This document shows, piece after piece, positions 1-60,683 of a DNA stretch of 64,000 bases. This DNA comes from Bispira polyomma (Eukaryota), in the NCBI GenBank assembly GCA_965649765.1, contig OZ287758.1, positions 13,330,001 through 13,394,000 of the forward strand, given 5' to 3'. The notes beneath the pieces are model-generated. The model worked only from the letters and a program-made list of their open reading frames with translations. It did not search any database and was not told the DNA's origin. The stretch's first letter is position 1. Each line of letters opens with the position of its first letter. The translations under genes were made by a program, and so were the position numbers.

Positions 1-3000
1 AAAATTCTGCAAAAATACGTTTTTGTTAAAGGCAAATGTAATGTCTGACTTTCTGAAAGTATAAAAGCCGTTTGATTGCAATGGAATACCTATATTTTCT
101 AAACAATTTTGGAAAGCCGATCTCACGTGAGATTGGACAATTGGTTATAATAGGGGTAAATTGGCTGAAAATCGTGGTCAGTGGTCTAGAAAGGAAAAGT
201 TCCCTAAAGGGGCAGAGATGATGGTGTTAAACAAAGAAATTTGTATAATGTGTGTTTTAGTTCTACTTTGCAAATTGTTTGCTCATTTTAAGATGACATA
301 AGCTCCTGGTGGGGCAAAAATTATCTTTTTCTAAGAAAATGCTTTCAAGCGTAAAAAAAACCTCTAGAATGAGAGGCTATGTTTAAAAGCCTGATAAACC
401 CGAAAAATTACAAGAGGAAAATTGTTATATCCAATATTGAATCATGTAAGATTTGACAAGCCTGTGAAATTTGTGTTAATTGATTTATATTAAATCAACT
501 TTAGGATGGAAAGAGGAGTTAATGGTTATACTCCTAGGCTGGTATTCTTGAACGTATACTCACCTTAAGCTTATCCTCAACTCAAATCTGGATTCTCCAT
601 AACTCTTGATATGGTAAAAATATCTAAAACCTGACTTGATATTTGAATTCAGTGTTAAAAGCTCTATAAAAATGCATGGTCACACATATAGGTTATTACC
701 ATATACAATGATTTCCACATGGTCTATATTTGAGTTGAGTATGAGTTTAAGCTGAGTATACGTTCGAGAATACGGGCCCTAATAAACAAAGTTATGGAAT
801 TGTGAGTGAAGGGAGCCATGTCCACTGTAATTTCCTAGCCATGATTTTTTGAGAAGAGAGATAGTTAATAGGTTAAAGTATTTTAGGGGAACTTTGTTCC
901 ACTAATACTGATTGTAGAAGTCTTGTAATAATTCAGCATTTGGTGGCTTGGCAGAATATATCCTGAAAAGAGTATTTGCTATGATATTATGTTTGCCTGA
1001 AATGTATTGAATTTCTATAGGTGTGTCATGAGTGTCAAGAAAAAGCCAAATAGTCTTCACACATATGGTTAAAAGGGTACCCCTAGTTTTCTGAGTGTTC
1101 ACAACAGGCAGTATGGCCATGTTATAGCAGTGAAAGTGTATATACTGGTGTGCCCATTTGGGCGCCCAGACACGCAGTGTGAGAATAATATTTAACATCT
1201 CAAGGTGAACAAACTCTTGATTGTAAATCACTAAGATCCCCCCCTCCCCTAAGACGTGTGAGACAAGCGTCTAAATGTTATTTGTTCCAATTTGACGCTG
1301 TGGATGGGTCGATAAAAGTAATGCCATTTAAAGTTTATTAGAATTTTTTAACCATGCCAGATCGTTCTATTAATAAAGGTACATGCATAAATGAACATAC
1401 AGTAATTTACCCAGTAACGACTAAGCATGATTATATGCCTATTGTAAATGTCACAACGACATTCCAAAATCTCAAAAAAAATTCTTTTGAATACTAATTG
1501 TTTCCTCTATGATGTCTATATCTATCCCCAGGCATGTGATATTTGTGCTTGGGGGATGAGCTTCTGCCTTGCAGCAAACGCAAATATTATTTTCTATGTA
1601 GCATATTGAAACCATGGTGACTCATATAGGGCCCAACTGCATCAGAACAGTGTTGAAAGGCCGCCATTCAATGGACCCAGTCACTGCCAGATCAATGTAT
1701 TCTCTTAGAACAAAATATCGAGTTTCAATGCATCGACAGGGTCTACACGCAGGTTGCGGAATGCTCTAGTGATGTCAACTGCAAATAAAAGTGTCAAATT
1801 CACTTTTCAAAGTAAATTTCAATCCATCGAAGAGTGATTTATTGATGTTCTCAATTACTGAGCGGCCATACAGAAGTGACAAATTTAGTATAACTCTGCC
1901 ACTGTTAATATCTTTCGGAAGCCTCAGAAGCGGTGAGCAATGGTAATGTGGAGAGTCACCTTCACTGGGCCTAACATAGTTCCTTTACTCTTTTCTTTTC
2001 AAGATAATTTCCTACATTCTTAGTGCGTTAAACAGCAGAAAGGTGGTACACCACAAGATTATTGTTCAGCTCAAATGGGTTGGTGAATGATAACGGGAAC
2101 CCAAATTTAATATATTGGCAAAGTAATTGATCAGGGTAGTCTCCAAAGACATACTCCTAAGCTTCAAAATGTAAGCCAGGTAAAAGTGGGATCCTAGCCT
2201 GTCGGTCCTGGACAGCAGTGTCCTTGATAACAGTGGTCCCTTGCAGCATGTCCTCTACTGATTGAATGTTCCTAGGTGGTCTCTCTGGGCCCATCAAAGT
2301 GAAGTCATCTCTAACCTGAAGTATTTCATCTTTAATGTCATCAATCAATGCATCAATTAAAATATTTAGTGTAATTACAACAACCCTGCTTATGGCATGC
2401 CATATCTCTCTTGAAATAGTGTACACTATTGGAAGCTTGCTAAACCAATGTTGGGTGATGAATTTCTACTTCATTATATGAATTCTCTATTAAAAAAGTT
2501 AAGTGCACCATTACTATGATTTCCCAAGTTTGAATAATTTCAAATAGTCCTTTTGGTCACATCAAAGTATATGTTGAAAAGCACCTTAATTATATCGGAT
2601 TTGTCTTTTAAATATACAATAGGAGTGATGGTTTGAATTGAATTAGAGTAACCCGCCAATTGTTTATTGAAACTTGAATTTGACAATTGTTATTGTCAAG
2701 CTGACTTTGATTGTTACTGTTGCTGTATCCATACAAGTGGTCTATCACAGTGTGAACTACTGGCTGGCCTGATGACTGAAAGCCATAGCTTTTTCTGTCC
2801 TAAAATTGAATAAACTGTTGAACAAGATTAGTGCAAGTATCATTCATACAGGAAATATTAATATTATTAACATCAATAGTACTATTTTCAATATTGATAT
2901 AAGTTCTTTTCAATGTTAATCTCCACTTTCGTGTATATATATTTACTGTTACTATTATTTTGTTCTCAATTGTTGACTATTCAGTTTTACCCTATGGCTG

Positions 3001-3760
3001 CCTACAGTGCTGCCCTTATCACTTATCATCAATGTTAGTCCATCTGGTTGAGAACCGTAAGTAAGAGAAGTAAGTGAGTGAACTCTTCCCCCCCCCCCCC
3101 TTTACTCAAGAGATTCATTGTCTTCAAAAGCCCGTTCTGCCAAGACAGAGAACTTATTGTTCAATACTAGACCTTTTGCTTTACGATTGTAGTGACAATC
3201 ATCTATTGTGTGCTTTTTGACACATTTTTGCAGAACAGCCCCCCCCCTCCCCTTTGTGACATGTGGGTTGTTGCACAATATGTGTAATAAAATGAGATTT
3301 TTTAAGACCAAGGGTGGCTTCCGAGGTGTCAACATTGCCATGTTTAATGTGTTTTTTTAAACTCTTTTGTTTCCCCTTGCTTGTGTTACATATTTTTGAC
3401 ACCTTGCTGTGAATTTTCTTTTCACTGCCACCCGAGGCCCCTTTTTCATTATGTACAAACATACTTAGTACTACTACTTTGAACCTTTTCTAGATCACTA
3501 AAACTAACTTTAGCCTTGAAATATTCACAAGCTTTATATATCATTAAATTGTCTAGCAAGCTAAAATCTTTAAAAAATTCTAGCTTCTGATCTAATTTTA
3601 CTCATTATGGTCCCTCAGTTTTTTACCCTTTTTAGACAATTACTGGTTCTGTGACTACCTTCACAAGTTTCACAGCTGGGCTTTTAAAATCGGCCACATG
3701 TATTATGACTGTTCAGTTATTTACATGTCCTATCCTGGAAAAACCAACAAGACAAAGACA
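1..3760 (-). mobile_element. Decayed tyrosine-recombinase (DIRS/Ngaro-type) retrotransposon, family A, copy 1 (YR remnant, RNase H, RT, upstream region; internal deletions)
   Basis: ORF 902-1231 has DIRS-type RNase H motifs (HLEMLNI..LRVW, C.N.A, I.GK.N..A..L.R). Frameshifted RT lies at about 1300-2200. Collinear with 4860-17345 and 45050-56980, with deletions at about 2307, 2773 and 3056. Confidence 0.8.
537..778. mobile_element. 242-bp MITE, PIF/Harbinger-like
   Basis: Imperfect TIRs of about 50 bp (ggctggtattcttgaacgtatactca... / ...tgagtatacgttcgagaatacgggcc). 3-bp TSD CTA at 534-536 and 779-781. Empty site at 27040-27042. Confidence 0.8.
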
Positions 3761-4125
3761 TTGTCATACTCTTGGATTCTCTGATAAACTTCAGCCTAGA
3801 TCTTTGAGTTGCTGTGGGAGGCTTTGAAGAGAAAAGTTCATTGATGCTGGCTTTTTCCTCTTGGTTTTTTAAACGTTCGTCCTGAGATTTTAACTAATCT
3901 CCCATACCTTTTCATTACAGACAATAATTTTTCAAAGTTTTTCTCACAGTATATTGCTCTGTGTATTGTTTTGTTCAATTTTTTGACAATCTTCCATTTC
4001 ACCTTTTGCCCCATGCAGAGACAATTGCTCAGGTATGGCGCTACCTCGAATCGACTTCTTATGCTACCTAAATAATACCACAAACATTTATGCTATTATC
4101 CCCCCTAGCTAACTCCTTTTGGTTT

Positions 4126-4848
4126 TGGCATTTATAAAATTATTTCCTATTTTAAATTTTTATGTATAGTTGTACATTTAACTCTTTGTGTAAATGAATT
4201 CTCCAAACACGTTAAATGTGGTTTTTCCCTACCTTTGCTTTACATGGTTTTTTAGGAACTATGTAAGTCACTGTAGGACTCGAGAGCAAAACAAGTCAGT
4301 CGCAGAAGTAGAGGGTTTACTGTATCTGCATCAACACACTTGTAAGCTAATTACTTAAGACTAATCAGAGGTGTCTTAGAGGAAGGTCTACCTAGTTAAG
4401 CTGTTTATTGGCCTAACAACAAATCAGAGCCAGTGTGTGGGAAGGTTTTCCTCCCTTTCCTGATTTACTTCATTGTAAATTTAATGACTAAAGTGTCAAC
4501 AAGTAAAAATTGTCCCAGCCTCCACCCAATAATTAGAGGTTACATGTATATATTTTAGTGATTGTATTATATGGTTATAAAAGAACATGGTTCAGATCAC
4601 TCTTTTGTCTACTTCTATACAAGTTATAATGCAACCTTATTGTTTATACACGTTATAAATTTTACATTTTATTTTATGGCTTTTTAGTCTTATTGACATA
4701 CCATGTTATGATTATATGGCATTTATAAAAATTTATCCTATTTAAAATTTTTATGTATAGTTGTACATTTAACTCTTGTAAATAAATTTTCCAAACATGT
4801 TACATATGGTTTTCCCCTGACTTTGCCTTACATGGTCTTTTAGCAACT
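4126..4848 (+). repeat. Direct repeat of about 133 bp (4126-4260 and 4717-4848) at the 3' end of YR element A; duplicated at about 44414 and 44908
   Basis: Both arms start tggcatttataaaa and end ttag(g/c)aact, with high identity. Confidence 0.85.
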
Positions 4849-5433
4849 GATTTACGCCACTCCCAGTAAATGACTTTCAAAGGTCAAGCAACATAATATT
4901 CTGCAAAAATACGTTTTTGTTGAAGGCAAATGTAATGTCTGACTTTCTGAAAGTACAAATGCAATTTGATTGTAATGGAATACCTATATTTTCTAAACAA
5001 TTCTGTAAAGCCAATCTCACGTGAGATTGGACAATTGGTTAAAATAGAGGTACATTGGCTGAAAATCGTGGTCAGTGGTCTAGAAAGGAAAAGTTCCCTA
5101 AAGGGGCAGAGATGATGGTTTTAAACAATGAAATTTGTATAATGTGTGTTTTAGTTCTACTTTGCAAATTGTTTGCCCATTTTAAGATGACATAAGCTCT
5201 TGGTGGGGCAAAAATTATCTTTTTCTAAGAAAATGCTTCAAAGGGTAAAAAAAAAACCCTCTAGAATGAGAGGCTCTGTTTGAAAGCCTGATAAACCCGA
5301 AAAATTACAAGAGGAAGATTGTTATATACAATATTGAATCATGTAAGATTTGACAAGACTGTGAAATTTGTGTTAACTGATTTATATTAAATAAACTTTA
5401 GGACAGAAAGAGGAGTTAATGGTTATACTCCTG

Positions 5434-5675
5434 GGCTGGTATTCTTGAACGTATACTCAGCTCAAAGTCATACTCAACTCAGATCTGGATTCTCTATGAC
5501 TCTAGATGCAGCAAAGATATCTAAAATCTGATATGATATTTAAATTCAGTGTTGAAAGCTCTATCAAAATGAATGGTCACAAGTATAGGTTATATCTAGG
5601 TACAATGATTTCCACATGGCCAATATTTGAGTTGAGTATGAGTTTAAGCTGAGTATACGTTTGAGAATATGGGCC
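5434..5675. mobile_element. 242-bp Harbinger-like MITE (same insertion as 537-778)
   Basis: Same TIRs; flanked by CTG (5431-5433) and CAG (5676-5678). Confidence 0.8.
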
Positions 5676-6141
5676 CAGATAAACAAAGTTATGGAATTGT
5701 GAGTGAAGGGAGCCATGTCCACTGTAATTTCCTAGCCATGATTTTTTGAGAAGAGAGATAGTTACTAGGTTAAAGTATTTTAGGGGAACTTTGTTCCACT
5801 CATACTGATTGTAGAAGTCTTGTAATAATTCAGCATTTGGTGGCTTGGCAGAATATATCCTAAAAAGAGTATTTCCAATGATATTATGTTTGCCTGAAAT
5901 GTATTGAATTTCTATAGGTGTGTCATGAGTGTCAAGAAAAAGCCAAATAGTCTTCACACATATGGTTAAAAAAGTACCCCTAGTTTTCTGAGTGTTCACA
6001 ATAGGCAGTACGGCCATGTTATAGCAGTGAAAGTGTATATACTGGTGTGCCCATTTGGGCGCCCAGACACGCAGTGTGAGAATAATATTTAACATCTCAA
6101 GGGGAATAAACTCTTGATTGTAAATCACTAAGATCCCCCTT

Positions 6142-8159
6142 TTAAAAATAAATATAGAGAAAACGCAGGTGTTTTGGTTGGGAAGCAAAAAACATGAGGC
6201 TGAAATATGCACAGACTTAAACTTAAACTGGGTACACAGGTTTAAGTTATTAGGCATGCATTTTGATACAGATACAGAAAAAATCAATGAACTGAACTAT
6301 GAACCAAAACTCTCTGAGATAGAGAAACTTTTGTCTGTTTATAAGAAAAGAAATTTAAGTTTAATAGGTAAAATTACTGTCATAAAAACACTTGCAATTC
6401 CAAAGTTGGTTTATCTACTTACAGTTTTGCCTCCACCAGAGGAAAATTTTTTCCTTGATATGGAACGAATGTTTAAGGGCTTCCTGTGGGATGGTAATGT
6501 TAGAATAAAATTATCACAGCTTGAACAAGATATCTCAGAGGGGGGTCTGAAGTTAACAAATCTGCGAAACTTCCATATTAGTCTGAAGCTATCTTGGATA
6601 AAAAGGTTAATAGAAACAGATGGGACTTGGCAAAAACTTTTTGAGTACATTTGTCAAGTTGATAAGTATAGAGTTTGGGAGTTAGACACAGAATCTTTGT
6701 CAAACCTTAGCTGTTTAAAGACTACTAACTCTTTTTGGAAATGTGTTTTGAACATTTGGATTCGGTATAAGAAAACCTATTCATATACTGATCCCAGACA
6801 TTATCCGATTTGGGGAACCTACTTTATACAGAATGCCAACTTGCTTAAATTGAGACCCATTTTTGAGAGTAGAGATATCCACTACCTAAATGATTTAATT
6901 AATAATATAGGTGAAATTTATGGCTATGAAGAACTCTGTCAGTGCTTAAGACGAAAAATAAATTTTGTAGATTTTTACAGCCTCATGCACAGTATACCTA
7001 GAGAGTGGAAATTAGAATGTAGATATAGATTAAAAAAGAGTGAGGTTAAACAAGTTGTACTAACTGAATTATTACAAATGCCTAAAGTTTGCAGAGGGAT
7101 ATATGTCAATTTATTAGAAAATACAAAAGTGATTCGTCCCCACATGCAAAAATGGTTCAGCATTCTTCAAGGGGATATTGATCCATCTGACTGGAACATA
7201 TTTTATTCGATGAACTTTAAATGTACTATAGAAAGTAAAATGAGAAGTTTTCAATATAAAATATTACACAGAGTTATACCGACAAACAAATATCTATATC
7301 TATGTGGCATAAAGAGTTCAGATAAATGTTATTATTGTAAGCAGTGGATAGAAACTATTGAACATCTTTTTTGGTTCTGCCCAATTATTCAGAAGTTTTG
7401 GGAGGAATTTAAAAACATTTTAAATCCTTATATTACTATAGATCAGTTTTTCATACCTAAATTAGTACTACTAGGTTATAATGGTGCAAAGAACAAAAGA
7501 CTAATAAATCATTTATTTAATGTAATGAAGCGGTATATTTATGTAACCAAATGCACTGACAGTGTTCTTAGCATAAATCGGTTAAAGCAAATTATTGTAA
7601 ATGTTTTCCTGGTAGAGAAATCTGTGGTTAATCAAAAGATTACTGGGAATGTTGATATCTTTTTTGAAAAGTGGCAACCATTATTAAATTTGATTGAGAA
7701 CTAAACCAAAATTGTAGTAACTTTTTGAAGTAGTATTGTTGAAGCTAATAAAATGAGTCAGGGTTTTTTTTGGGGGGGTGTTACAGGAATTAATGTGTAT
7801 TTAAAAAAAAAAAAAATGTTTATTTCCTCTTGTAGAACCACTGTATCTATACAAGTATTATAAAAAATGCAGTGTATCATTTTATATAACGCTGGGTACA
7901 AATTTCTATGCATACTTTTATTTTTTCTTTATATAACTGTTTTTTGATGCCCGGTTAAAGTTTTTAAATGTGCAAAATCTTATATATAAATCTTGTTATA
8001 AAATATTTTGTGTTTTTGAATATTATTCCTTTGGTTCAAGTACCCTGTGTGGTACAGTTTATTGTAAAGTCCCAGTGAGAGGGTTGCAACCTCTCCCCTC
8101 TGCATTTGGTGTCTGAAAAATACTATAAATAGAGGGAATAAACTATTTAAAAAAAAAAA
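6142..8159 (+). mobile_element. 5'-truncated L1/Tx1-clade LINE insertion
   Basis: TSD aagatccccctt at 6130-6141 and 8160-8171. AATAAA at about 8137 followed by poly(A). Empty sites at about 1233 and 46318. Confidence 0.9.
6169..7704 (+). CDS. C-terminal half of L1/Tx1 ORF2 (end of RT, thumb, CCHC zinc knuckle); open from 6142 with no true start
   Basis: Motifs LKINIEKTQVFWLG, LSLIGKITVIKTLAIPK, EGGL, LRSFQYKILHR-like (MRSFQYKILHR) and CYYC...ETIEHLFWFC. 511 codons without a stop. Confidence 0.9.
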   Translation: MFWLGSKKHEAEICTDLNLNWVHRFKLLGMHFDTDTEKINELNYEPKLSEIEKLLSVYKKRNLSLIGKITVIKTLAIPKLVYLLTVLPPPEENFFLDMERMFKGFLWDGNVRIKLSQLEQDISEGGLKLTNLRNFHISLKLSWIKRLIETDGTWQKLFEYICQVDKYRVWELDTESLSNLSCLKTTNSFWKCVLNIWIRYKKTYSYTDPRHYPIWGTYFIQNANLLKLRPIFESRDIHYLNDLINNIGEIYGYEELCQCLRRKINFVDFYSLMHSIPREWKLECRYRLKKSEVKQVVLTELLQMPKVCRGIYVNLLENTKVIRPHMQKWFSILQGDIDPSDWNIFYSMNFKCTIESKMRSFQYKILHRVIPTNKYLYLCGIKSSDKCYYCKQWIETIEHLFWFCPIIQKFWEEFKNILNPYITIDQFFIPKLVLLGYNGAKNKRLINHLFNVMKRYIYVTKCTDSVLSINRLKQIIVNVFLVEKSVVNQKITGNVDIFFEKWQPLLNLIEN

Positions 8160-11078
8160 AAGATCCCCCTTCCCCTAAGGCGTGTGAGAAAAGCGTCTAA
8201 ACGTCATTTGTTCAAATTTGACGCTATGGGTGGGTCGATAAAAGTAATGCCATTTAAAGTTCATTAGAATTTTTTAACCATGCCAGATCGTTCTATTAAT
8301 AAAGGTACATGCATAAATGAACATACAGTAATTTACCCAGTAACGACTAAGCATGATTATATGCCTATTGTAAATATCACAACAACATTCCAAAATCTCA
8401 AAAAAAATTCTTTTGAATACTAATTGTTTCCTCTATGATGTCTATATCTATCCCCAGGCATGTGATATTTGTGCTAGGGGGATGAGCTCCTGCCTTGCAG
8501 CAAACGCAAATATTATTTTCTATGTAGCATATTGAAACCATGGTGACCCATTTAGAACCCAAATGCATCAGAACAGTGTTGAAAGGCCGCCCTGCAATGG
8601 ACCCAGCTACTGCCAGATCAATGTATTCTCTTAGAACAAAATATCGAGTTTCAATGCATCGACAGGGTCTACACGCAGGTTGCGAAATGCTCTAGTGATG
8701 TCAACTGCAAGTGTCAAAGTCACTTTTCAAAGTAAATTTCAATCCATCGAAGAGTGATTTATTGACGTTCTCGATTACTGAGCGGCCATACAGAAGGGAC
8801 AAATTTAGTATAACTCTGCCACTGTTAATATCTTTCGGAAGCCTCAGCAGCGGTGAGCAATGGTAATGTGGAGAGTCACCGTCACTGGGCCTAACATAGC
8901 CCCTTTAGTCTTTTCTTTTCAAGATAATTTCCTACATTCTTAGTGCGTTAAACAGCAGAAAGGTGGTTCACCACAAGATTATTGTTCAGCTCAAATGGGA
9001 TGGTGAGTGATAACGGGAACCCAAATTTAATATATGGGCAAAGTAATTTATCAGGGTAGTCTCAAAAGATATACTCCTAAGCTTCAAAATGTAAGCCAGG
9101 TAAAAGTGGGATCCTAGCCTGTCAGTCCTGGACAGCAGTGTCCTTGATAACAGTGGTCACTTGCAGCATGTCCTCTACTGATTGAATGTTCCCAGGTGGT
9201 CTCTCTGGGCCCATCAAAGTGAAGTCAGTGAAAGATAGTGCCAAGAAACCCACGCTTTTATGAGGCTCATTAAAGCCCTTAATCTGATTAAATTTGACTG
9301 ATTACTTTGAAGAATTTGAGTGAAGTTGGCGCACGATGGATTTGTGTACATTTTTTTGACAATCAAGTCTCACAATTGACTTGTTATATTTGAGTCTACA
9401 TACATTTGCCTCAGTCTGACTTCGCACATCTCTAACCTGAAGTATTTCATCTTTAATGTCATCAATCAATGCATCAATTAAAATATTTAGTGTAATTACA
9501 ACAACCCTGCTTATGGCATGCCATATCTCTCTTGAAATAGTATACACTATTGGAAGCTTACTGAACCACTGTTGGGTGATGAATTTCTACTTCATTATAT
9601 GAATTCTCTATTAAAAAAGTTAAGTGCACCATTACTATGATTTCCCAAGTTTGAATAATTTCAAATAGTTCTTTTGGTCACATCAAAGTATATGTTGAAA
9701 AGCACCTTAATTATATCGGACTTGTCTTTTAAATATACAATAGGAGTGATGGTTTGAATTGAATTAGAGTAACCCGCCAATTGTTTATTGAAACTTGAAT
9801 TTGACAATTGTTATTGTCAAGCTGACTTTGATTGTTACTATTGCTGTATCCATACAAGTGGTCTATCGCAGTGTGAACTACTGGCTGGCCTGATGCCTGC
9901 CAGTTGTTCTCATCATACGTATTACCATGGATGTTAACACTTTCATGTACCTTGTAGTACTGATCAGGTACTGCTGACTGAAAGCCATAGCTTTCTCTGT
10001 CCTAAAATTGAATAAACTGTTGAACAAGATTAGTGCAAGTATCATTCATACAGGAAATATTAATATTATTAACATCAATAGTACTATTTTCAATATTGAT
10101 ATAAGTTCTTTTCAATGTTAATCTCCACTTTCGTGTATATATATTTACTGTTACTATTATTTTTTCTCAATTGTTCACTATTCAGTTTTACCCTATGGCT
10201 GCCTACAGTGCTGCCCTTATCACTTATCATCAATGTTATTCCATCTGGTTGTGAACCGTGTCCCTAATTACTGATTCACCGCTTGGCTGGTTGTTTACTA
10301 ATGTTCTTTTTGAAACACTTGAACTCAGGATGTGATGTTTCTTTATGTAATGTTTTACTACAATATCAGCATATGTGCCTATAAGTCCTGTGGTCCGCCT
10401 TATGTGTACATTTGCAATTGTTGAACAGTTTACAGATAGATTTACTGTCCATACAGAAACCAAGACACAGACAGGACAGACAGGGATATTGTAGCTCTGG
10501 TTTTTCCTGGAATTATACTACAGCTTGTCATAAAAAAATAGACAATAAGAAAGAGCATATAGTGGTGAATATGTTGGACTATTTATTTCGTGATTTTGGG
10601 ACACAAATATAGAGTAAAACTTTTAGAAACTTGGATAATCATGTAAAATCTTGTAATCATGAAAATAAAAGCACACTGGCCAGTGTAGCAAAAAGACTAA
10701 TTAGTACATAACAAGAGTGTTTACATAGTGAAGTGTGCACTGAAGTATGCAAATAAAAGCCCACTGGCCAGTGCAGAAAAAGGACCAACTGACAGTGGAG
10801 ATTTTGTTGGATATACATTTTAGCAAGAAAACATTTGTGACAAAAGCGTTAAATATTGTGGATAATACTACACACTGATTTGAACTTTCTGTACCTCATA
10901 TGGTGATGGGTTAACCCCATGCTTGTTGTGTTGTGTTTTGGTAAGAGGAACATTTTCCTGGGTTAACCCAGTGCATGTTGTGAATATTATTAGAAATGTG
11001 GATTATATTTGCTATGTAATATTACATTAGGAAATCTCTCACACTTGCTTATGTATAAGTTTTGTGCTTCTTCTTGTG

Positions 11079-12290
11079 ATGAATAGAGGAGGAACAGTCA
11101 AGAAATTGCACGATACATCTTTTAGTTCTACAGGAACCTCCAGTCCAAGTCCATATACAAATAGAAAGCCACTTGTGCAGATCAAAATGTTACAGGATGA
11201 TCAAGATACAGGATTACCATCTGACTGGGCAGCGCTGGACAGCAGTGAAAAGTTGGACAGGATTATGGTCACTCTAACCAATGTGGATCTAAATCAGCAC
11301 ATGCTTTCAGACTCCCAAACAGCAAACGAGCTCTCTTTTAGGAAGCTAAATCTTAAGGTATCTCAACTAGAGGGTAAGAATGTCAAGCTGGAGAGGGAAT
11401 TGGCCAGTCTTAAGACTCAGTACTTGAATTTGCAGCAACGATCAATGCAAACTAACCTTGTGTTTCATGGAATTGCTGAAAAAGACAGAGAGAATTGGGA
11501 AGACATCATCATGGAATTTTTGTCGGAGAAATTAAAAGTTAGCAGGAGTGACATATATAGTATTAGGAACTTGGCTGGTGAAATATGAATTGACATGGCT
11601 CACCGTGCTGGCAGAAAGACAGTTTTGCCAAGTGAGTGTCATCCCATTGTCATAAAATTTCTTACTAGGAAAGGGAAATCACTTGTGCTTCAAAATGTAA
11701 GACACTTAAAGGGAACTCAGTTTAGTGTGACTGAACAGTTACCTTCAATAATTAGAGAACAGCGACAAGCCCAAGTACCCAAAATGCAAGAACTTAGAAA
11801 GCAATTACCTGACAAAACACAGCATACTATCAAATTAGTTAATAATAAGCTATTACATAACAAGCATATTATGTATGGTGAATTTGTTAAAAATCCCTTG
11901 CCGGCTACTGATGCTACTGATGATATGTTTGAGTACAATGACTTGGTGCACTCTGAAGTGAATGAGTATGAAGACAGTTATTTCCAGGCTCATGCTATTC
12001 AGGTCAATAGCACCATGGAGGCATGTTTGGCAAGGAACATCAGCAGGCTCTGCACATCACTTGACCTATGTGTATCGATTTGAGGGTAGTTCTGGAGACC
12101 TAGTGGAAGGTTACAGTGATGACGGTGAGGTCAGAGGCAGCATAGAAATTAGACGGGCACTTAATCGGAACAACAAGAAAAATTTGTTTTTGCCATCACA
12201 CGTGTGCACAATGGGCCAAATATTGGCCAGAAGAGGTTTGATTTGATTAGGGATGTAACAGAAGTTGTGCTTAACAATGCTGGGCTGTGA
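11079..12290 (+). pseudogene. LINE ORF1: coiled coil + RRM + C-terminal IMPACT/YigZ (UPF0029)-like domain; one stop and two frameshifts
   Basis: LQQRSMQTNLVFHGIAE and IDMAHRAG...PIVIKF (ORF1 RRM), in frame across the TGA at 11586. Then SYFQAHA, SAHHLTYVYRF, SDDGE and (frameshift) AITRVHNGPNIGQKRFDLI. Confidence 0.8.
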
Positions 12291-12904
12291 ATGTTGAGAC
12301 TTATATGCTTAACAAATTTTAAGTATTGTAAATGCATATGGTTACCTAGGATAAATGTAATTAAGTTGTGCTTCCCAATGCTAGGCTGATATTGACACTT
12401 GTATTCTTGACAAATGTTGTACTAAAAATGCATATGTTTAACCAGGATAAATGTAATTAAGCTGTAAAATCTTTTAGCTACCAGTAGCGTCAGTTAAATT
12501 ATATCAATAAAAATAAACCTCTAAATTGATCATAGCTACGTTTAAACTGTTCTAATCACAGTTTACTATTCTTCTCCTTTACTAGATAACAATTTTTAAT
12601 CGAATCAAACCATAAAGCATGATAACCTATAACATTTTGTACATGTTTTAGTTTGCCAGTGGGAGATTACCTAGTGTAAATCCTTTATTTATGTTTATTG
12701 TAATTTCCCGTGGACTCAATTTATCATCTCATTCATTTTCCAACAACATGTGTGACTTATACATAAGGTTAGGTTGTTTTAAAGGTATATTTTCCTTTGA
12801 ATTGAGACTGTTCTGTAGCATTTCATGTTTATACTTAATATATTTTCTTCCGTGACTGACACATTACAGAATCGAGCAGCTCCAGGGAAGTTACTGTCAA
12901 ATTG

Positions 12905-14338
12905 TAGTAAATCTAGATTTAAAATATGTCATATAAATGTTTGAAGTGTATGTTCTAATAATTTTTTCAAACTTGATGTGATGAATTCCAAGTTATGCTG
13001 AGATGGCCAATATGATTTGATCTGTATGAGTGAGACATGTTTGGATTCAAGTATACCTGACTCTGATATATTGCCAGAAGGATATAGTGTTTATCATAAT
13101 GATCGAAATAGACATGGGGGTGGTGTAGCTATATACACTGCAGAAAATTTAGCTGTTAAAAATAGAACTGACCTTTGTAACTCAAACTTAGAAGCACTTG
13201 TATTAGAAGTCATTGTAAATTCAAAACATTGTCTAATTGTGTGTTGTTACAGATCACCTGGGGCAACAGTTGAACAAGCTGATAACTTCATTGCTGACTT
13301 TCAGTGTATGTTAGGCTTGATATATAACAGTAAATATGATTCTCTCTTTATATTAGGTGATTTTAATGACCGGTGTATAGACTGGGTTGATGACCATCCA
13401 AGTAGTGAATTAAAGGATAAATTTAAAAATTTGATCAGTGAAAATAATCTTTTTCAAATCATAGAATCTCCAACACACACTACACCAACGTCCGCTCATC
13501 TGCTTGACTTAATTATCACTGATTCTCCTGGTATTATTATGAATCATGGTGTGGCTGAACCAATTGGAGATCCACATCACAATATGATGTTTTGTGAAAC
13601 AGCTATTACTCATGTCAAAGATCATTCTTACACAAGAGATGTGTGGCATTATAACAGGGGTGATTTTGTGAATTTTTGTGGGGAGCTAAAACTTGTACCT
13701 TGGCATGCTCTTAGTGCTCTGGATATTGATGAAGCGATTGTCATTCAAGCTGCCCCGTTTAGCTAAGAGACAGATATATGTGAGCTATGCAAGACCTATA
13801 TTAGAGTATGGGGCAGAATTGTATGATAGCTGCTCTGTTGAACAACAAAAGATGTTAGAATCGATACAATGACACAGTTTTGCTTAACAATTACTGGGGC
13901 CTATAAAGCTACTAAACATAAATGTCTTTTATCTGAATGTGGATTAGAACTGCTCAAGGACAGACGTTTGATAAAAAAATTTGTCCTAATGTATAAAATT
14001 CTGAATCATTATTCTCCAGAATATCTTTACAAGTTATGTCCCAAGGGTGGTGTGCTTGGCTATAATCTGAGAAATAGTACGCATATTCAGTCAAATCTTT
14101 GTAAGAAAGACTATTAAATCATTCCATCAGTTATAAGACTTTGGAACCATGCTCTGTGTGTAAAACTGGTCCAGAAACTGTGACACATTATTTCATAAAA
14201 TGCCCTGCTTATGCTGCTCATAGAGATGAAATGCTACAGAACATAAGTACTCATATACCGGAAATTAATCTACTTGGTAGTCCAAGTGAGTTTATGGCAC
14301 TGGTTTTTTTAAAATTGATTGAACACTATTTGACATAG
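12905..14338 (+). pseudogene. CR1-group ORF2 remnant: APE endonuclease joined by deletion to the post-RT C-terminus
   Basis: Motifs KICHINV, ICMSETCLD, DRNRHGGGVAIY, LGDFN, LLDLIIT and CSVCKTGPETVTHYFIKC. Confidence 0.9.
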
Positions 14339-15957
14339 TACAGTTGTTTAATTCACACACCAATCGGTTCACTATTAATTAGATTTTAATGTCACACATG
14401 TTACATGTCATCCTATCATTCATCTTTTGTACTATGTAATAACTTCCTGTTTTGCTAAATTATCACTCAATAGTGTATCATATTTCTTTTTGTACTATAT
14501 GTTGTTGTTTAACTGTGTAAAATGTGTTTTTGGACAGGAACCCCAAGTGGCTTGTAGCTGTGGGTAATTGTCGTTAAATAAGTTATGTTTAAATAATTTA
14601 CTGTCCTGTCCTGTCCTGATTTTGTTACCCAAACTTAAGAGAGAGGTAAACCCATAAGCAAAATTGCTTTGATTGTGCCACTGTAAGTGTCACTGTCTGC
14701 CACTTAATAACAACTCCTTTTTGTTTGATTTTTTTAATTCCCACGAATATTTGTCAGAGGAAGAAAAACAATCAGTGCCACTTCCACTAGTATTGTTTTC
14801 CTGTCGAATAGGTCCCTTTTGTTTACATTGTGGGAAGAGAAATAAGAGAATGAACTCTTCCCCCCCCCCTCTCTTTACTCGAGAGATTCATTTTCTTCAA
14901 AAGCCTGTTCTGCCAAGACATTGTGTGCTTTTTGACACATTTTTGCAGAACAGTCCCCCCCTTTGTGACATGTGGGTCGTTGCACAATATGTGTAATAAA
15001 ATGAGATTTTTTAAGACCAAGGGTGGCTTCCAAAGTGTCAACATTGCCATGTTTAATGTGTTTTTTTTAAACTCTTTTGTTCCCCTTGCTTGTGTTACAA
15101 ATTTTTGACACCTTACTGTGAATTTTCTTTTCACTGCCACCGGAGGCCCCTTTTTCATTATGTACAAACATACTTAGTACTGCTACTTTGAACCTTTTCG
15201 AGATCAATATAACTAACATCAGGCATTTTAGCCTTGAAATATTCACAAGTTTTCTATATCACTAAATTGTCTAGCAAGCTAAAATCTTTAAATCCAGTAT
15301 TATACACAGCTCTTCCAAAATTTCTAGCTTCTGATCTAATATTACTCATTATGGTCCCTCAGTTTTTTAGCCTTTTTAGACAATTACTGGTTCTGTGACT
15401 ACCTTCACAAGTTTCACAGCTGGGCTTTTAAAACTGGCCACATGTATTATGACTGTTCAGGTATTTACACGTCCTATCCTGGAAAAACCAACAAGACATG
15501 GATCTCTTTTTGTAACACCCTTTTTGCTAGTAGTACTCAAATTTTGGCCATTAAAAACATTGATATTTTGGGAGTCAGTGAAGTGATGTTGCACATAAGC
15601 TCGACATATTATTTCTACTTTCTCTACCTGTAACTAGGACAATTTGTCCATCTCCATATTAGTTAGTACTACTGCATGGCACGCTTTTGTTGCCTTTCAA
15701 ATAAAAGTCGTGTGCATATTCCATCAGTCCCTATATAATCTACCATTGCAATTTCAATTTCTAGGGATGTTTCGTTATGAACAATGCGAGTGAAACCACA
15801 GATACACTGTACCAATGATGAATAGTCATAGCTTGGGCAAGTTGTTGTTTTCAATACATAATTCTGAGGCCATTCAACCACCTTTTTCACAATTACATTG
15901 TTACATCCTGTTCTCTGGAATTTAACTTTACCTTGCGAGGGATTTTTATTAATGGCC

Positions 15958-16712
15958 TTAAGGGTTTAGTAACGTAAACACATAAACTGATTGCCGATAA
16001 CCACGTTACGTGTTTTCGAGGTTCTCTGAAACTGCACAACTTCTATTTTGTTGCCTTAAACTCGGTTTATGAAAAACATATTTACATTTTTATGAGTAGA
16101 AATAATAAAAAATGATATCTATTTTAATTAAATGCTAATTTTTATATTTTACGTGTTGTTTTAATATATATTTTGGGACATATAATACAGTGGCAGTGTG
16201 TAAGATTGTAACAAATATGGTTAATATTTGTCAAAGTACATGCTTCACAAACGTGACACAATTAACCTACAATGAAGAAATCAATAAAAGTATTATACAC
16301 CACTATAAGAAGGAAGACTTCAGCATCGTTTTGAATGAATTCGTTTTTCAATAAGAGCACAAAAATTTTAGAGAAACATTAAAGTTACACTTTTCCAAAC
16401 AGAAAGATATTTTATATTCTTCGTTTTTATAAAATCAGGAAACATATTGACAAAAGTGAATCACCAAAAACAATATACACTTTCTCTAAAGTTGGGTAGA
16501 ATACATAATATCATATTATATGCTGGATCAATACTCGTATTATGTCACAACAAAAAACCTACTCTCCGTGATTTGTTTACAAATATGACATTCCTCCATA
16601 GATTACAACAAGTGTTATAGGGCTTTTTAATCACTTTGTGACAAACTACTTAAGTTTTAAATTGTGTAGGCATAAGAAAATAGTTAAAAAGATTACTAAG
16701 GAATTATTTTAA
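15958..16712. mobile_element. Probable DNA-transposon-derived insertion starting at TTAA (Kolobok-like left end); related end at about 17626; duplicated at about 55570
   Basis: About 750 bp absent from the homologous region near 30470. ttaagggtttagtaacgtaaacacataaa resembles ttaaagctttaccaacgtaaacacacaaa at 17626. No clear right TIR. Confidence 0.35.
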
Positions 16713-17299
16713 GGCTGCCATAGTGTGTATATAGGCAAAAATAAACTGATGCACATGTAGTATGATTGTAGTAGCAATCTGTCTCAAGAAATTGACACTA
16801 GACACGATACTGTCAGTAACTGTAACACAACTTGATTGACATTCACCTTCATTTACAGAAGTAGTAAAAACATAGACTCACATTTTTACTTTTGAGGTTG
16901 TCTACCAACGCTGCCTCCGGGAGTTGAGCTTGTTGGTCCATTTGCTCCAAAAATGGCAGAGTGACTGTGATTGCTTGAAAATCGCTGTTGACACAGCAGA
17001 TTGTTTATCCACTGGCCGCCACCAACGAGTTCACATTAATCATGTCAACAATGACTTCCTTTACTAAATCATCTGCACGAGCCATACAATTTCTTCCAAC
17101 CGGCGGTTTGTGTTTTTGAAAGCAATTTGGACAAAAAAACAATCTTAATACCTGGCAAGACTAACAGCAAGAATAAAACAGTAAAATATCTGTAAAAACG
17201 TAAAATAAACAAGTAAAATAAACAAACTCTTTGCCACACCAGGTATAATATTTTTCAATACTTCTCCTCTGTAAACGATGTGGGAAAATATTAAAGGGG

Positions 17300-17335
17300 A
17301 TCGCTTATATACCTGGCCAGGCATCCCATAATAGT
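17300..17335 (-). promoter_or_regulatory. Candidate TATA-box promoter at the 5' end of YR element A (also about 30700 and 56925)
   Basis: Minus strand reads attatgggatgcctggccaggTATATAAgc. Conserved in diverged copy 3, close to where homology between copies ends. Confidence 0.35.
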
Positions 17336-17499
17336 AATCTAACTGGTACCCCAGAACTAACCCCGCTATCGCCGTTATCCTGCTGTATGGATTTTATAGT
17401 TCTAAAAATAACTATAAAGGATAAGTAAATTGCATCAAGTTACTCAGATTTTGTTCTTTATATATACTTCACTTTGTATATTTTATATTATATATCAGT

Positions 17500-17630
17500 G
17501 ATTTTGAAATTCCCTGAAAATTTTAGAGATTTCATGAAATCACTGACCAATTCAGGTGTTTCATGAAATCCCTGAAATTTTAAGGAATTACTGATTAAAT
17601 CCATGAAATTTTAAGGAATCACTGATTAAA
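17500..17630. repeat. Degenerate minisatellite (tgaaatccctgaaatttt-like units)
   Basis: Repeated tgaaat(t/c)cctgaaa and aaggaat(t/c)actgattaaa units; copy at about 57118-57245. Confidence 0.6.
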
Positions 17631-18014
17631 GCTTTACCAACGTAAACACACAAATGCGTAGCCCGTAAATTATACTTTAGTTATGAAAATGTTTTAACTA
17701 TAAGTGTCCACTATGGCATCCTTATATTATATCTTGATTGTTTTAACCATTTTTATATGTAAATTTTATTTAAAAATTCAATATTTCTTTGCAAAGTGAT
17801 TGAAACCTCCATTTAACGAATATTGTATTGTGACGGCTTATAAACAGAAATATGAGAGTGTTTTCCAAAATCTGCTGTGTCCCCATATTTTAGCGTTTAC
17901 TTACGGTGAGATCATTCAAAATGATTACTGTTCTTCATACAGCTGACAACAAGGGAACCAGAATTTTGTATACGTTTTTAAAAGCCCCGATTTTCATTTT
18001 TACAATAGAAATGG

Positions 18015-18275
18015 ACGATTTGCCTGGTCAAAATGAATTAGTTTCTTTTCTCAAACCTATACGTAGACAAAAGCCCTGGGTTTGAAAGGTGGGTACTTGT
18101 ATTTCAGCTTGTTTTGTTATGTCTTTAACATATAACTTGGACAAAATCGCCTTGGTCAAAATAATTTACTTTTGCATTCAACCTATAACTTGAACAAAAT
18201 TGCCCTGGTCAAAATTAATTGTTTTTTGGTCTCCTACTTTTAACTTTGATAAAATTGCCCTAGTGAAAATGACAC
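18015..18275. repeat. Dispersed short repeats gacaaaatcgccctggtcaaaat (about 4-5 degenerate copies)
   Basis: Motif variants at about 18020, 18140, 18192 and 18250; copy at about 57630-57885. Confidence 0.55.
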
Positions 18276-19320
18276 GAACAGGTACCCAGGTGCGTACGCC
18301 AACCCATGGTCACTTAAGTCAGTGACTTCATCAGCTAATGTATTTATTCTTATCAAATGAATATTCATCGGTCACTGATTGCTTGTTTGTGTTTCATCAC
18401 TAACCCCTTAAATAGATCCCCTGTAACATTTATAATTCATACTTTGAGTCATCCAAAATCTGTTTATTTGTACGTATGTGAAACATGTCTCTTAGAAAAC
18501 CAGTGCACACCACACTAAAGGTGCTTAAATTTACAATAAATAATGGAAAGTGTGAAATGATAACTTAAACAATATTTGGAATTACTGTACACTGCAAGTT
18601 TAAAAGTATATAATGGTCACCTAATAAAACACCATGTCATGGCATTTGATCCAATATGTAAATGCAATTGTTAATTACATTTATGTAGGTCTGGTAGGTA
18701 AATACCAGGTTTAACATATTTAAATATTGGGATTGTAAGACTTTGAGACTTGTAAACCAATTGTAGACCAATTAATATGTCAAAATACTTAAATAAAAGT
18801 GCAAACTCCATAAATTTAACACTACAGGAGAGTCTTACAGGACACAGGATAATGTTAGAAGAAAAAATCTGACAGACTGTTTAACATAGGATGCTATCTC
18901 AATGATAAGCAGGCCTGTATTACAAACAATAGCAAGAAATGAATATCAAGGAACTCTATTGGAGGAAATTACACAGGCATTTTTTAAGAAAAACATATTG
19001 TTCAGTAGAGAAAAGTGATTTTAAAATTATTACAGGTACTTTTAAATCAATTAAAAATCAGAAAAAGGTGATTAAAATCAATACTGCAGGTTATTTACAT
19101 TTTGGGCAAAATTTTTATTTATTTACTAAAATATTTTTAACAATATTTTGCACTCTTGATACATATCTCAAAAGCAAGGAAACAAATTATCTGATCCCTT
19201 TGCCACCACCATGGATTAACTGCTCTCAGGCTGTTGTAACTCTCCAAACAATCTGCCAATCTACAAATGCCATAGTAATCATATTTACAACTTATACAGG
19301 CTTTTGGTAATAGTTCAACT

Positions 19321-20579
19321 TTAGATTTTATTATGGAAATTATATGTCAACTTCATGTCTTTGAATAGAGATGACTCAACAATACTATATGGAATATTTT
19401 TGTAAACAAATTGTGAGTCATTTGATTTACAATACTCTTGGGGTACTCTCACTTTTGGAATATATCTGTAGCACCCCAACTCATAATTCATTGCACACAC
19501 TGCCTTTTTGAGGTTTCTCATTTCGAGGGCCATTAATATACAGTCACCCCCTGTAATAATAAATGACTCAGTGAATTGTCCCCTTTGTACAACCATTTTT
19601 TTCTTTGCCATTTTCTGTACTTCCTGCCAGCTGTCTAAAACCAACAGAATACCGTCATAGATATCTTCACAAAAGCTTTTTGCAGAAGCCAAAATCCTTT
19701 GAAAATCTCTGACCTCCACTGTAAAAGATCTCCCAGCTGCTTTCACTTTCATTTTGTGAATATGGAGGAAATATTTATACAAGTCATAATCCAGGGATGA
19801 CATATTCCTGTGCCTTTCGTACAGAGCTCCATACTGCTCTGGATTATCGTCTTTGTTTAAGTATGTAGCCTTTTTATGGGTGACATAAATGATATCTTTC
19901 ATTTCCCAACAGAGTTTCCTCTTGAATAGAACCAGGCTCTCATCGTAAAACTCATTAATTATAACAACTGGGAAGTCTTCTTCAATCTTTTGAATACTGT
20001 GTGCTAGGTATGTTGTATTTTTCAAAGCCTTGGCAACGTCATAACAAAAATATTTATACATAGTATTTTCCAGGTACATACCTCTTTTTAGTCTGTACCG
20101 CTTCAAATCTGGATCAAAATAAGCGTCTCTGAGAAGTGTTTTAATGGGATCACCTTCATCAATGATGTCTGTAAATATGGGCTTTTTATATTCCATAAAA
20201 TAAAAAAAAGACCTAAAATTGTCAAATGGATGCCGTAAGGTGGCTACAAAAACAGTATCTGCATGCATAAGTTTAAGAATTTTATTTTTGTTGTAAGAAG
20301 AATGAGTAGAGTGTATGTCAAACTTGAAATATTTCTCCTCCTCAGGTTCATATTTCACATTTCCATACAGAGAATTGGGATGTGTTGTTATTGTTGTTTG
20401 TGTCAGATTTTTCTCTATGGACTTTCTCATTAATATATTACTAAAGGTGGAGCTTCCTGTCTTTGGGACCTTCAGGTAGTAAACATGTAGGTGCGGCTCA
20501 CAATAGCTATTTCTGGATTCGCTTTCCACTGTGGACACATATGCTAATTCAGTATTTGTCTCTGGGATGATGGACATTC
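19321..20579 (-). CDS. Galactose-3-O-sulfotransferase-family protein (GAL3ST-like), copy A, catalytic exon
   Basis: 5'-PSB motif LKVPKTGSSTFSNIL, 3'-PB motif TLRHPFDNFRSFFYF, INEFYDESLVLFKRKLCW and SLDYDLYKYF. Phase-1 acceptor ttttatgttag|GA at 20580/20579. Confidence 0.9.
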
Positions 20580-20979
20580 CTAACATAAAATGGACAAAGG
20601 ATAGGTATCACACAGTTCTTATATACATGTTACTATTAATGCTTCACCTCAATAGAAATGTTATAGAAATGATTTAAATATTAAAAATAGATATATTAAA
20701 TGCCCCTTCAGATTGTTACATATTTTAACAAATCTTTACACTTTATATTATTGAACAAATATTTCTAGGACTATCTTTGCAAAGGAAGTTCTTTATTAAA
20801 AAATTACATTTGTCAAGTTAATCGATCTTTTCAATTTGGGGATAAAATCATTTCTTAAATTGCCCAGTCATTCAGTGACACTTTAAAAGCTGCCATAACT
20901 TTCTAAAAGATTTATATTTGTGAGTATGACATCAATTATCTGACTATTATTACAAATAATACATGACAATTACACTCAC

Positions 20980-21070
20980 CAATTTGTTTGGTATTGGTAG
21001 AATACCATAACCCATAGGTTATTACCAGGACAAATACCATAATTGGGAGCACCACAAATCTCTTAATCAC
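20980..21070 (-). CDS. GAL3ST-like copy A signal-anchor (type II transmembrane) exon
   Basis: Translates (VIK)RFVVLPIMVFVLVITYGLWYSTNTKQI-G and ends G|gtgagt in phase 1. This matches the phase-1 acceptor of the catalytic exon across a 400-bp intron. The exon's 5' boundary is uncertain. Confidence 0.8.
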
Positions 21071-21741
21071 ACAAGGAGAAGAAAAAAATGCTCTTTATTA
21101 AGTGAATTATTTGTCAAGATTAGTATTAATATCATTAATATTAATGGCTTCACAGCACAAATGAATCAAGAACACTAATTAAGATATAAATACAAAACTA
21201 ATACATAGTAACACAAATACTAAGCATTTGTATCAGTCATTTATTTATTTAAAGCACTTGTATAGTCACAAAACAATAATGTACAAGAAAGCACAATATT
21301 TTGAGGTTAAATTTTATTGAAATATATCCGGACAATTGCTTTTAATTTTGGATATTTCTTCAAAAGGATATAATGTTAATTTATTATACATCCTTATTTC
21401 AATATAACATCTAAAAACTTGACCTATAATCAACTTCAAAGAATTCACCAAAATTTATTTAGTTTACTGTAGGAAAAGTAGGGAAAATTAATTCCCACTG
21501 AAAATGTTCACTATAATACATATATGGAACTGACCTGTCCATTTTGTCAAATGGAGAAACATGTATTGACTAAAAATGCAATATGAATACTTAAAAGTAT
21601 GGAATGATTTATCCTTACATTATTATATAAACACAATTTTTAATAGCACTGAACTTTATCAAAGTGTATGTACATATTGAAATATAAAAACACTGTTTAT
21701 ATTAAGCAATGGATTGTTGATATAAAAAGGAATTTACTGAC

Positions 21742-21765
21742 CCTGCCGGATATTATTTCATCCAT
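21742..21765 (-). CDS. Candidate first coding micro-exon of GAL3ST-like A (MDEIISGR)
   Basis: ATG...AGG|gtcagt in phase 0 would join ttttcttctccttgtgtgattaag|AGA in frame. ATG and donor are also present at 33409-33432 and 61363-61386. Speculative. Confidence 0.35.
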
Positions 21766-21784
21766 GATAAGCAAGCATGAAACT

Positions 21785-22078
21785 TTAGTTGTGAAATAAA
21801 ATACAGTTTTTGTTCAAATAAAAATAGTTGCAAACTAAAATACAGCTCTATGTTCAAATTAAAATGCTGGTGATGCAATAAACAATGGGATCAATATATA
21901 TTTCTTTCTTCAAATATGACAATCATATTGATTTAGTTGCAAATCAAAATACAGTTCTTGTTCAAATAAAAATAGTTGCAAACTAAAATATAGCTCAATG
22001 TTCAAAATAAAATGCAGGTGATACAATAAACAATGGGATCAATATATATTTCTTTCTTCAAATATGACAATCATATTG
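21785..22078 (+). repeat. Tandem duplication of about 148 bp upstream of GAL3ST-like A (copy at about 61406-61699; single copy near paralog B)
   Basis: Two adjacent copies of ttagttg...caaatatgacaatcatattg. Confidence 0.85.
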
Positions 22079-22829: not shown

Positions 22830-23040
22830 GTATAATGGCTGGCAGCAGAGTACCTTCCTTTAAATACCTCAAATCAAACTCCCAATTCAAGCTGAAGTCG
22901 GCAGGCGTAATAGGTTCTCTTCATGGAGTAATTTCAGGTAAACAAAACAAATCTCTTAAGTCAGATTGATTTAGACAAAGGACATAAAGGACGTAAAGAT
23001 AACAGTAAATTACTTTGTGTAGTGTAAGTACAGATCCTGG
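22830..23040 (+). pseudogene. Gag-like remnant of a further YR retrotransposon (plus strand); longer copy at about 34080-34540, duplicate at about 62450
   Basis: MAGSRVPSFKYLKSNSPIQAEVGRR...GKQNKSLKS resembles the family B gag region (SNSKI*AEVYQRIQEY...LKSGR). Confidence 0.45.
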
Positions 23041-60592: not shown

Positions 60593-60683
60593 CAATTTGT
60601 TTGGTATTGGTAGAATACCATAACCCATAGGTTATTACCAGGACAAATACCATAATTGGGAGCACCACAAATCTCTTAATCAC
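60593..60683 (-). CDS. GAL3ST-like copy C signal-anchor exon
   Basis: Same sequence as 20980-21070, with a G|gtgagt donor. Confidence 0.8.

Follow-up and report, generated by a model that had tools for sequence, protein, structure and literature searches.

A UPF0029 (IMPACT/YigZ) domain at the C-terminus of a decayed LINE ORF1 in Bispira polyomma belongs to a widespread ORF1 class

The first open reading frame (ORF1) is the least understood part of long interspersed nuclear elements (LINEs), and its accessory domains (esterase, PHD, zinc knuckles) hint at how the ribonucleoprotein (RNP) is built and targeted. Surveys of ORF1 list coiled coils, RNA recognition motifs (RRM), C-terminal domains (CTD), CCHC, PHD and esterase domains and some domains of unknown function (PMC4120745, PMC5203782). 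Accessory esterase and PHD domains have been described in ORF1s of CR1 and L2 elements (PMC3905857; PMC4120745, the latter also citing Kapitonov and Jurka 2003), the L1, CR1, L2 and R1 clades all include type II ORF1s, and swapping of ORF1 between lineages is documented (PMC4120745). UPF0029, the family of the “ancient” domain of IMPACT, Yih1 and YigZ, had 0 occurrences in the two surveys PMC4120745 and PMC5203782, and our literature search for UPF0029 together with retrotransposons found no paper, although these searches were partly swamped by the everyday word “impact”. Here we describe a 64,000-nt stretch of contig OZ287758.1 (C11; hereafter the window) of the 1.04-Gb Bispira polyomma assembly, AT-rich animal DNA (34% GC, no N), which carries a decayed LINE whose ORF1 ends in a UPF0029/Impact_N (PF01205) domain, and we compare it with relatives in the same genome and beyond.

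The closest described systems each cover a part of this protein. Human L1 ORF1p (2yko/2ykp/2ldy) shares the coiled coil, RRM and CTD, with ~195 columns aligned to a model of an intact relative (L003), and the LINE ORF1 described here adds a C-terminal UPF0029 domain of ~115 aa after the CTD. IMPACT and Yih1 (6bqi) share the Pfam family and signature residues, the latter in full with the L1-like LINE families and in part with the window family, but the LINE ORF1s have neither the RWD domain nor the acidic linker, and their domain is multi-copy and fused to a LINE RNA-binding protein, unlike host IMPACT, which is one gene with introns and lies on a different chromosome. The structures closest to the window-family domain are those of YigZ and TT1547 (1vi7, 2cve), at a sequence identity of 17–24%; their C-terminal domain, which is EF-G domain V-like (DUF1949, ferredoxin-like), is absent from the LINE protein because ORF1 stops ~4 residues after UPF0029. 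The CR1/L2 ORF1s with an esterase or PHD domain follow the same principle, an accessory domain on a modular ORF1, with one ORF1 type found on differing ORF2 backbones (reticulate evolution); here the accessory domain is UPF0029.

The remnant in the window is read in three pieces. The first peptide ends in ...EYEDSYFQAHAIQVNSTMEA and lies in the frame of the RRM-CTD part of ORF1 (11064, 11589), the middle piece (SAHHLTYVYRF...GYSDDGEVRGS) lies in the +1 frame, and the last piece, AITRVHNGPNIGQKRFDLIRDV..., returns to the first frame and runs up to a stop codon at 12288–12290. Alignment with five subfamily copies placed the two breaks as a 17-bp deletion at 12030/12031 and a 1-bp deletion at 12189/12190. 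The original prediction, made from the letters alone, had described precisely this: a C-terminal UPF0029 domain in frame with the RRM and interrupted by two frameshifts. Because the domain is broken by the deletions, the window copy by itself falls below the PF01205 gathering cut-off of 27 bits, the profile matching the middle piece only (18.1 bits, E 0.0028). In place of repaired frames or a consensus, we used unbroken natural copies and the intact ORF1s of other families. The window subfamily has ~10 further ORF1-length copies at 89–92% identity. None of these has a fully open ORF1, and six (L035, L038, L039, L041, L044 and L048) have the domain segment uninterrupted, in a single frame that closes at the stop used by the window copy, so family members continue through this segment rather than ending ORF1 earlier. 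Three of them were scored against PF01205, with clear matches of 46.4, 44.0 and 41.3 bits (L035, L038 and L044, respectively) over profile positions 2–105 of 107.

An AlphaFold2 (AF2) model of the L044 copy (190 aa) has a predicted local distance difference test score (pLDDT) mostly >90 in the domain. Compared with 48,161 PDB representatives by VIA-align, it matched TT1547 (2cve, Z 17.3) and E. coli YigZ (1vi7, Z 16.6), both with a root-mean-square deviation (rmsd) of 1.7–1.9 Å over 112–117 residues (2cve, 1.7 Å over 112), and then yeast Yih1 (6bqi, Z 10.9); the next structures reached Z <=6.7. This second tier (Z 5–7) comprised uS9/uS5, EF-G/TetM domain IV, RNase PH/exosome, MutL, GHMP kinases, Lon and the endoribonuclease YicC (Z 6.7). 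The window family keeps the signature residues S-FQ-H, A-x-H, Y-R, DDGE and R...G...RF, with changes of ATHN to SAHH, YAYR to YVYR and RWYGG to RVHNG. Altogether, these results confirm that positions 11961–12287 are the decayed C-terminal UPF0029/Impact_N domain of a LINE ORF1.

UPF0029 is the regular fourth domain in a large class of LINE ORF1s that has no name. A genome-wide PF01205 search gave 427 candidate sites. Of these, 150 were scored, and every one clears the cut-off (60–96 bits), many in open frames of 400–540 aa. Many of the sites lie in open ORF1s of 450–516 aa; three intact ORF1s of 509, 516 and 451 aa end with UPF0029 as their last 105–110 residues (E ~1e-25), and in intact ORF1s of other LINE families PF01205 scores 88–96 bits over profile positions 1–107. 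The plan is constant: a disordered N-terminus, a trimer-type coiled coil, RRM, CTD, a linker of 18–39 residues and UPF0029, and, besides the window family, five or more families of the genome have this four-part ORF1. In the AF2 model of L003 (509 aa, pLDDT 80.5), a helix of 116 residues (121–236) is followed by the RRM (239–327), the CTD (331–368), a short disordered linker and UPF0029. Foldseek matched this model to the human L1 ORF1p trimer (2yko, E 5.8e-7) and also to Yih1 (6bqi, E 1.6e-8), TT1547 (2cve) and YigZ (1vi7, rmsd 2.2 Å over 120 columns). Since the one model matches the L1 ORF1p trimer and YigZ-type structures together, we class the protein, on its predicted structure, as an L1-type (type II) ORF1p plus a fourth domain. 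Pfam Transposase_22 matched neither the window ORF1 nor the intact ORF1s. The RRM-CTD lies directly upstream of UPF0029 in 23 of 30 sampled sites; at the other seven no upstream RRM-CTD match was obtained and the open frame mostly begins a short way ahead of UPF0029, as might be expected if these copies were 5'-truncated or decayed. RWD (PF05773), which the first reading of the window had not seen either, was found in no LINE ORF1; the genuine IMPACTs that these searches also returned have both PF05773 and PF01205.

This ORF1 probably occurs together with more than one type of ORF2. Most of the UPF0029-ORF1 families examined are L1-like. At least one L1-like element (L051) has both frames open, an ORF1 of 509 aa and an ORF2 of 1186 aa (Exo_endo_phos, RVT_1, zf-RVT, FADD), with a spacer of 1.06 kb (L051:2331-3393), an A-rich tail and a 17-bp target-site duplication (TSD). 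Eight copies of its family have identical domain DNA, and unitig depth along the L1-like element is ~10x higher at the 3' than at the 5' end; this family is L1-like and recently active. The window family, on the other hand, has an ORF2 with Exo_endo_phos_2 (PF14529) and a reverse transcriptase (RT) with YADD and GVPQ-S-LGPLLF motifs that is 26% identical to the L1-like RT. By these features and its lack of poly(A) it appears to be a non-L1, CR1/Jockey-like family, and the earlier label “CR1-group” fits. The RT piece of the window LINE gave 16,236 first-look candidates genome-wide, and its relatives at 68% and 46–51% identity include open ORF2s of 1011–1151 aa; an Atlas search with an RT piece returned generic RT clusters only. 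One RT candidate (C5:43312271-43312663, minus strand) lies ~2 kb downstream of a UPF0029 match (C5:43314754-43315074), a pairing that suggests a second non-L1 family with a UPF0029 ORF1. Two side observations concern the flanks of these frames. An unusually long non-coding spacer of 0.7–1.5 kb separates ORF1 from ORF2 in every UPF0029-ORF1 family examined (e.g. L056:7169-8654), and the 5' untranslated region (UTR) of L051 contains a degenerate duplicate (541–790 vs 801–1050) of the first ~80 ORF1 codons, possibly a 5' monomer-like repeat.

The same design is found well beyond this genome. A word-based search returned 56 homologues, 54 of which carry PF01205 and none of which bears a functional name, and ESM Atlas clusters with Impact_N are labelled mostly Mollusca. 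An exhaustive phmmer search of 1.84 billion cluster representatives gave 134 at E<=1e-30. When the best 150 were checked for module order, 101 had both modules in the fixed order; in this set the linker is again 18–39 residues and the median distance from the domain to the C-terminus is 4 residues. Counted as clusters at 50% identity, over 100 carry this ORF1 design. A contig of another assembly encodes a complete pair, an ORF1 of 544 aa (Impact_N), a 1.5-kb spacer and an ORF2 of 1264 aa (Exo_endo_phos, RVT_1, zf-RVT). Public proteins with a UPF0029 ORF1 are unnamed, and their L1-type core goes unrecognised by Pfam.

We then compared constraint along ORF1 and the relation of the domain to IMPACT. 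Synonymous sites have reached saturation between the five families of this genome that were compared (synonymous divergence, dS, undefined or >2). Non-synonymous divergence (dN) between families was 0.27–0.56 for UPF0029, 0.33–0.74 for RRM plus CTD and 0.50–1.04 for the coiled coil; UPF0029, having the lowest dN, is by this measure under tighter constraint than any other part of ORF1. The near-invariant positions of the LINE domain are those shared with IMPACT, Yih1 and YigZ (S-FQ-H, A-x-H, Y-R, DDGE, R-W, G, R-F), the full signature (S-x-F-Q-x-H; A-(T/S)-H-N-x-Y-A-Y-R; D-D-G-E; (S/T)-R-W-Y-G-G-x-x-L-G-x-x-R-F) is retained in the L1-like families, and phmmer relates the LINE domain to the ancient domain of yeast Yih1 at E 1.8e-17. 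The host IMPACT gene lies on C4 at ~58.6796–58.6849 Mb, with RWD exons and an ancient domain split over four exons; it was found with a molluscan (Physella) IMPACT probe, a protist probe (P0056) having found nothing in the genome. Host IMPACT was compared exon by exon, and Physella and other IMPACTs took its place in a maximum-likelihood tree of 60 LINE domains, 22 eukaryote-wide IMPACTs and 12 bacterial homologues. In this tree the IMPACTs came together as a clan (96/98), as did the LINE domains (93/70, in 91% of bootstraps); within the latter clan, a long stem of 2.3 substitutions per site leads to the window family. IMPACTs are 50–63% identical to each other across eukaryotes and 28–42% identical to the LINE domains. 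Together, the separate clans and the difference in identity exclude a recent capture from the host gene.

The original prediction spoke of captured cargo, which suggests a recent, local event; this was not borne out, given the many families, the saturated dS, the separate clan and a host gene that lies elsewhere. Since host IMPACT, with its RWD and introns, is located elsewhere and the LINE domains group apart, we regard the fusion as old LINE equipment. An older origin is a different matter: an approximately unbiased (AU) test did not reject the LINE domains and animal IMPACT as one clade (delta lnL, the log-likelihood difference, 40; p 0.105), and p was 0.25 in a control that constrained only animal IMPACT to a clade, so the domain may descend from an old capture of an early animal IMPACT. 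As a side observation, proteins of ~150–185 aa consisting of UPF0029 only (L065, L066, L073–L076) were seen in TGA-recoded genomes of the Patescibacteria type (Candidate Phyla Radiation, CPR). They match the IMPACT/LINE profile at E 1e-26 to 1e-38, compared with 1e-10 to 1e-17 for the ~215-aa YigZ-type proteins of related genomes, and sit on a much shorter tree branch than the latter.

Our best overall explanation, to which we give a probability of roughly 0.8, is that the window holds a decayed ORF1 UPF0029 domain that is a standard module of a LINE class and whose most likely role is contact with RNA or the ribosome. The contact role taken on its own is a tentative proposal, one that we would rate somewhat short of even odds, and it draws on predicted structure and on analogy with IMPACT and Yih1. 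UPF0029 would be displayed three times on the ORF1p trimer and would keep nascent ORF1p on, or return it to, its own translating mRNA, leading to cis preference and RNP assembly; the domain might also aid translation of ORF2 across the 0.7–1.5 kb spacer. The second-tier structural matches (EF-G domain IV, uS5/uS9, RNase PH) correspond to the “ribosomal protein S5 domain 2-like” fold, widespread among proteins that bind RNA or the ribosome and among phosphoryl-transfer proteins. An association of Yih1 and IMPACT with ribosomes is reported in PMC4503747, which gives the function of the ancient domain as unknown.

A number of points weigh against this proposal. The region of Yih1 that has been mapped as ribosome-binding overlaps the linker and not clearly the ancient domain (PMC4503747). 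In the window family two signature motifs are partly lost, a poor fit to plain nucleic-acid binding, and the domain of L035, L038 and L044 is acidic (isoelectric point, pI, ~4.7; net charge ~-9), compared with a median pI of 8.5 in the other LINE families and 7.2 in IMPACT. Within the window family omega (dN/dS) is ~0.8, near-neutral as expected for dead copies, so selection is shown for the class and not for the window family in particular. The sequencing runs found gave only DNA-like unitigs. Finally, an active site would account for the invariant His, Asp-Asp-Gly-Glu and Arg no less well than a binding surface. The charge of the domain lent no clear support to nucleic-acid binding. With its acidic charge and changed motifs, the domain of the window family is a poor match to an RNA-contact and to an enzymatic role alike, and may reflect a function that has been relaxed or changed.

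The main rival is that the domain is an enzyme, its invariant Ser/His, His-Asn, Asp-Asp-Gly-Glu and Arg forming a catalytic site. Such a hydrolase or transferase would work on RNA, a nucleotide, tRNA or a peptidyl-tRNA-like substrate, and would be used on the element's own RNP or against host restriction. Nearly every LINE copy preserves the invariant polar residues, and in YigZ and Yih1 the invariant features cluster in loops on one molecular face (PMC4503747). Many families of the same fold are catalytic (RNase PH, GHMP kinases, Lon, the YicC endoribonuclease), and other LINE ORF1s bear a true enzyme, the esterase (PMC3905857, PMC4120745). Our literature search, however, found no reported activity for any UPF0029 protein, and the window family has altered several signature positions while keeping the fold. 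We consider a catalytic role unlikely on balance, yet the best of the alternatives. Much less probable is an IMPACT mimic that would tune host GCN1/GCN2, and with it the integrated stress response, in favour of LINE translation. The domain is homologous to the ancient domain of IMPACT, and IMPACT and Yih1 do inhibit GCN2, but they do so by competing for GCN1 binding through RWD (PMC4503747). It is the lack of RWD in the LINE proteins that makes this role improbable, and the 28–42% identity and separate clan described above speak against mimicry as well. That the window shows a chance or one-off arrangement (a host IMPACT exon, retrocopy or pseudogene beside a LINE, or a domesticated host ORF1-IMPACT gene), as the 18-bit score below the Pfam cut-off and the descent of both window copies from a single event could be taken to mean, has a negligible probability and is refuted by copy number and architecture: the copies number in the hundreds, are found on every chromosome, share one architecture and have TSDs, neighbouring ORF2s and a depth profile of 5' truncation; host IMPACT is elsewhere and intron-split; and other assemblies contain the same fusion.

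As the original prediction had stated, the remnant lies in a TSD-bounded element (Table 1). The 11-mer ATTTACTGTCC has four matches in the window against 0.04 expected, one pair flanking each of two copies of the element. Homology with other genomic copies starts at 10472–10479 and, in ~38 other copies, ends at 14594–14597. ORF1, spacer and ORF2 are continuous in homology across independent copies of the family, and the same RT lies 2–3 kb downstream of ORF1 at at least 12 loci. A 5' truncation is indicated by 179 candidates for the 3' end against 24 for ORF1. The 3' UTR has no poly(A). A (CTGTC)n stretch was considered as a 3' tail and rejected, as other copies stop before the repeat, which belongs to the target site. 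Within ORF1, residues 70–134 give weak coiled-coil Pfam matches, a profile built from the RRM-CTD of intact ORF1s scores 32 bits at 11433–11564 and 46 bits at 11589–11840, and an in-frame TGA stands between these two parts at 11586–11588. The spacer of this family contains a ~100-bp tandem duplication (50373–50480 and 50474–50576 in the coordinates of the second copy). ORF2 of the first copy is missing ~1.5 kb of RT at 13732/13733, a junction located by self-comparison with the second copy. The window copy is an ordinary dead insertion, and an old one. As to its surroundings, a different interspersed repeat at 10310–10445 (>25 genomic loci, 69–81% identity), whose homology ends at the TSD, is the insertion target of the LINE.

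Table 1. Features of the LINE and of its duplicate in the window
Feature	Coordinates	Strand	Remarks
5' TSD ATTTACTGTCC, copy 1	10440–10450	+	Exact 11-mer repeated at 14596–14606
Decayed non-L1 (CR1/Jockey-like) LINE, copy 1: 5' UTR, ORF1, spacer, ORF2 remnant, 3' UTR	10451–14595	+	
ORF1 remnant: coiled coil, RRM-CTD (11433–11840), UPF0029	11079–12290	+	Translations
UPF0029/Impact_N (PF01205) remnant, copy 1	11961–12287	+	Frame 1 to 12030, +1 frame 12031–12189, frame 1 from 12190
Inter-ORF spacer, ~0.73 kb	12291–13016	+	Present in every subfamily copy
ORF2 remnant: apurinic/apyrimidinic (AP) endonuclease, then C-terminal part with CCHC knuckle	13017–14338	+	ORFs
3' TSD ATTTACTGTCC, copy 1	14596–14606	+	11-mer match
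Same LINE insertion in second duplication arm; RT kept, degenerate	48566–54199	+	TSDs 48555–48565 and 54200–54210
UPF0029 remnant, copy 2	50073–50398	+	Same two deletions and TGA as copy 1

The second copy of the domain, which the original prediction had placed at 50060–50401 and which might be taken for a second insertion, is a segmental duplicate. Positions 8864–24379 and 46978–64000 form one segmental duplication of at least 15.5 kb at 97.4–98.6% identity that reaches the end of the window, and the second copy is not independent because both arms share the breaks, the TGA and the TSD. Its ORF2 equivalent still gives Pfam matches to Exo_endo_phos_2 (37.9 bits) and RVT_1 (52 bits). The ~1.5 kb of RT was lost from the first copy after the duplication; its counterpart in the second copy (51841–53336) is degenerate. 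Other features were seen in the duplicated segment. An intact-looking gene for a 421-aa galactose-3-O-sulfotransferase (PF06990, 125 bits) lies at 19321–20586 on the minus strand, with a twin near 58976–60334 and a third copy of the gene region at 31885–33252 (87% identity), and the ORF1 of a neighbouring LINE (24255–24353 and 63876–63974) gives a weak match of 19 bits to the RRM-CTD profile.

To our knowledge, the IMPACT/YigZ ancient domain is among the few universally conserved domains that have been without a known activity for more than 20 years, and its own activity has stayed unsettled for so long because the known role of IMPACT runs through RWD. If the fusion is indeed unreported, it adds a subtype to those known for ORF1, namely type II plus UPF0029. 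Recognising it has a practical side as well, as several hundred copies in this genome could otherwise be mistaken for IMPACT-like genes. We would give about an even chance to the full picture, in which UPF0029 is a long-standing, selected module of LINE ORF1s on at least two ORF2 backbones, sister to all eukaryotic IMPACT, with a core function directed at RNA or the ribosome. If true, and if indeed unreported, this would give a first example of the ancient domain acting in a defined RNA-protein machine that has no RWD, and comparing retrotransposition of elements that have or lack the domain, or its invariant residues, would provide a simple genetic read-out for its role. The presence of an RWD-less, selected domain beside an RRM argues for a role linked to RNA or translation.

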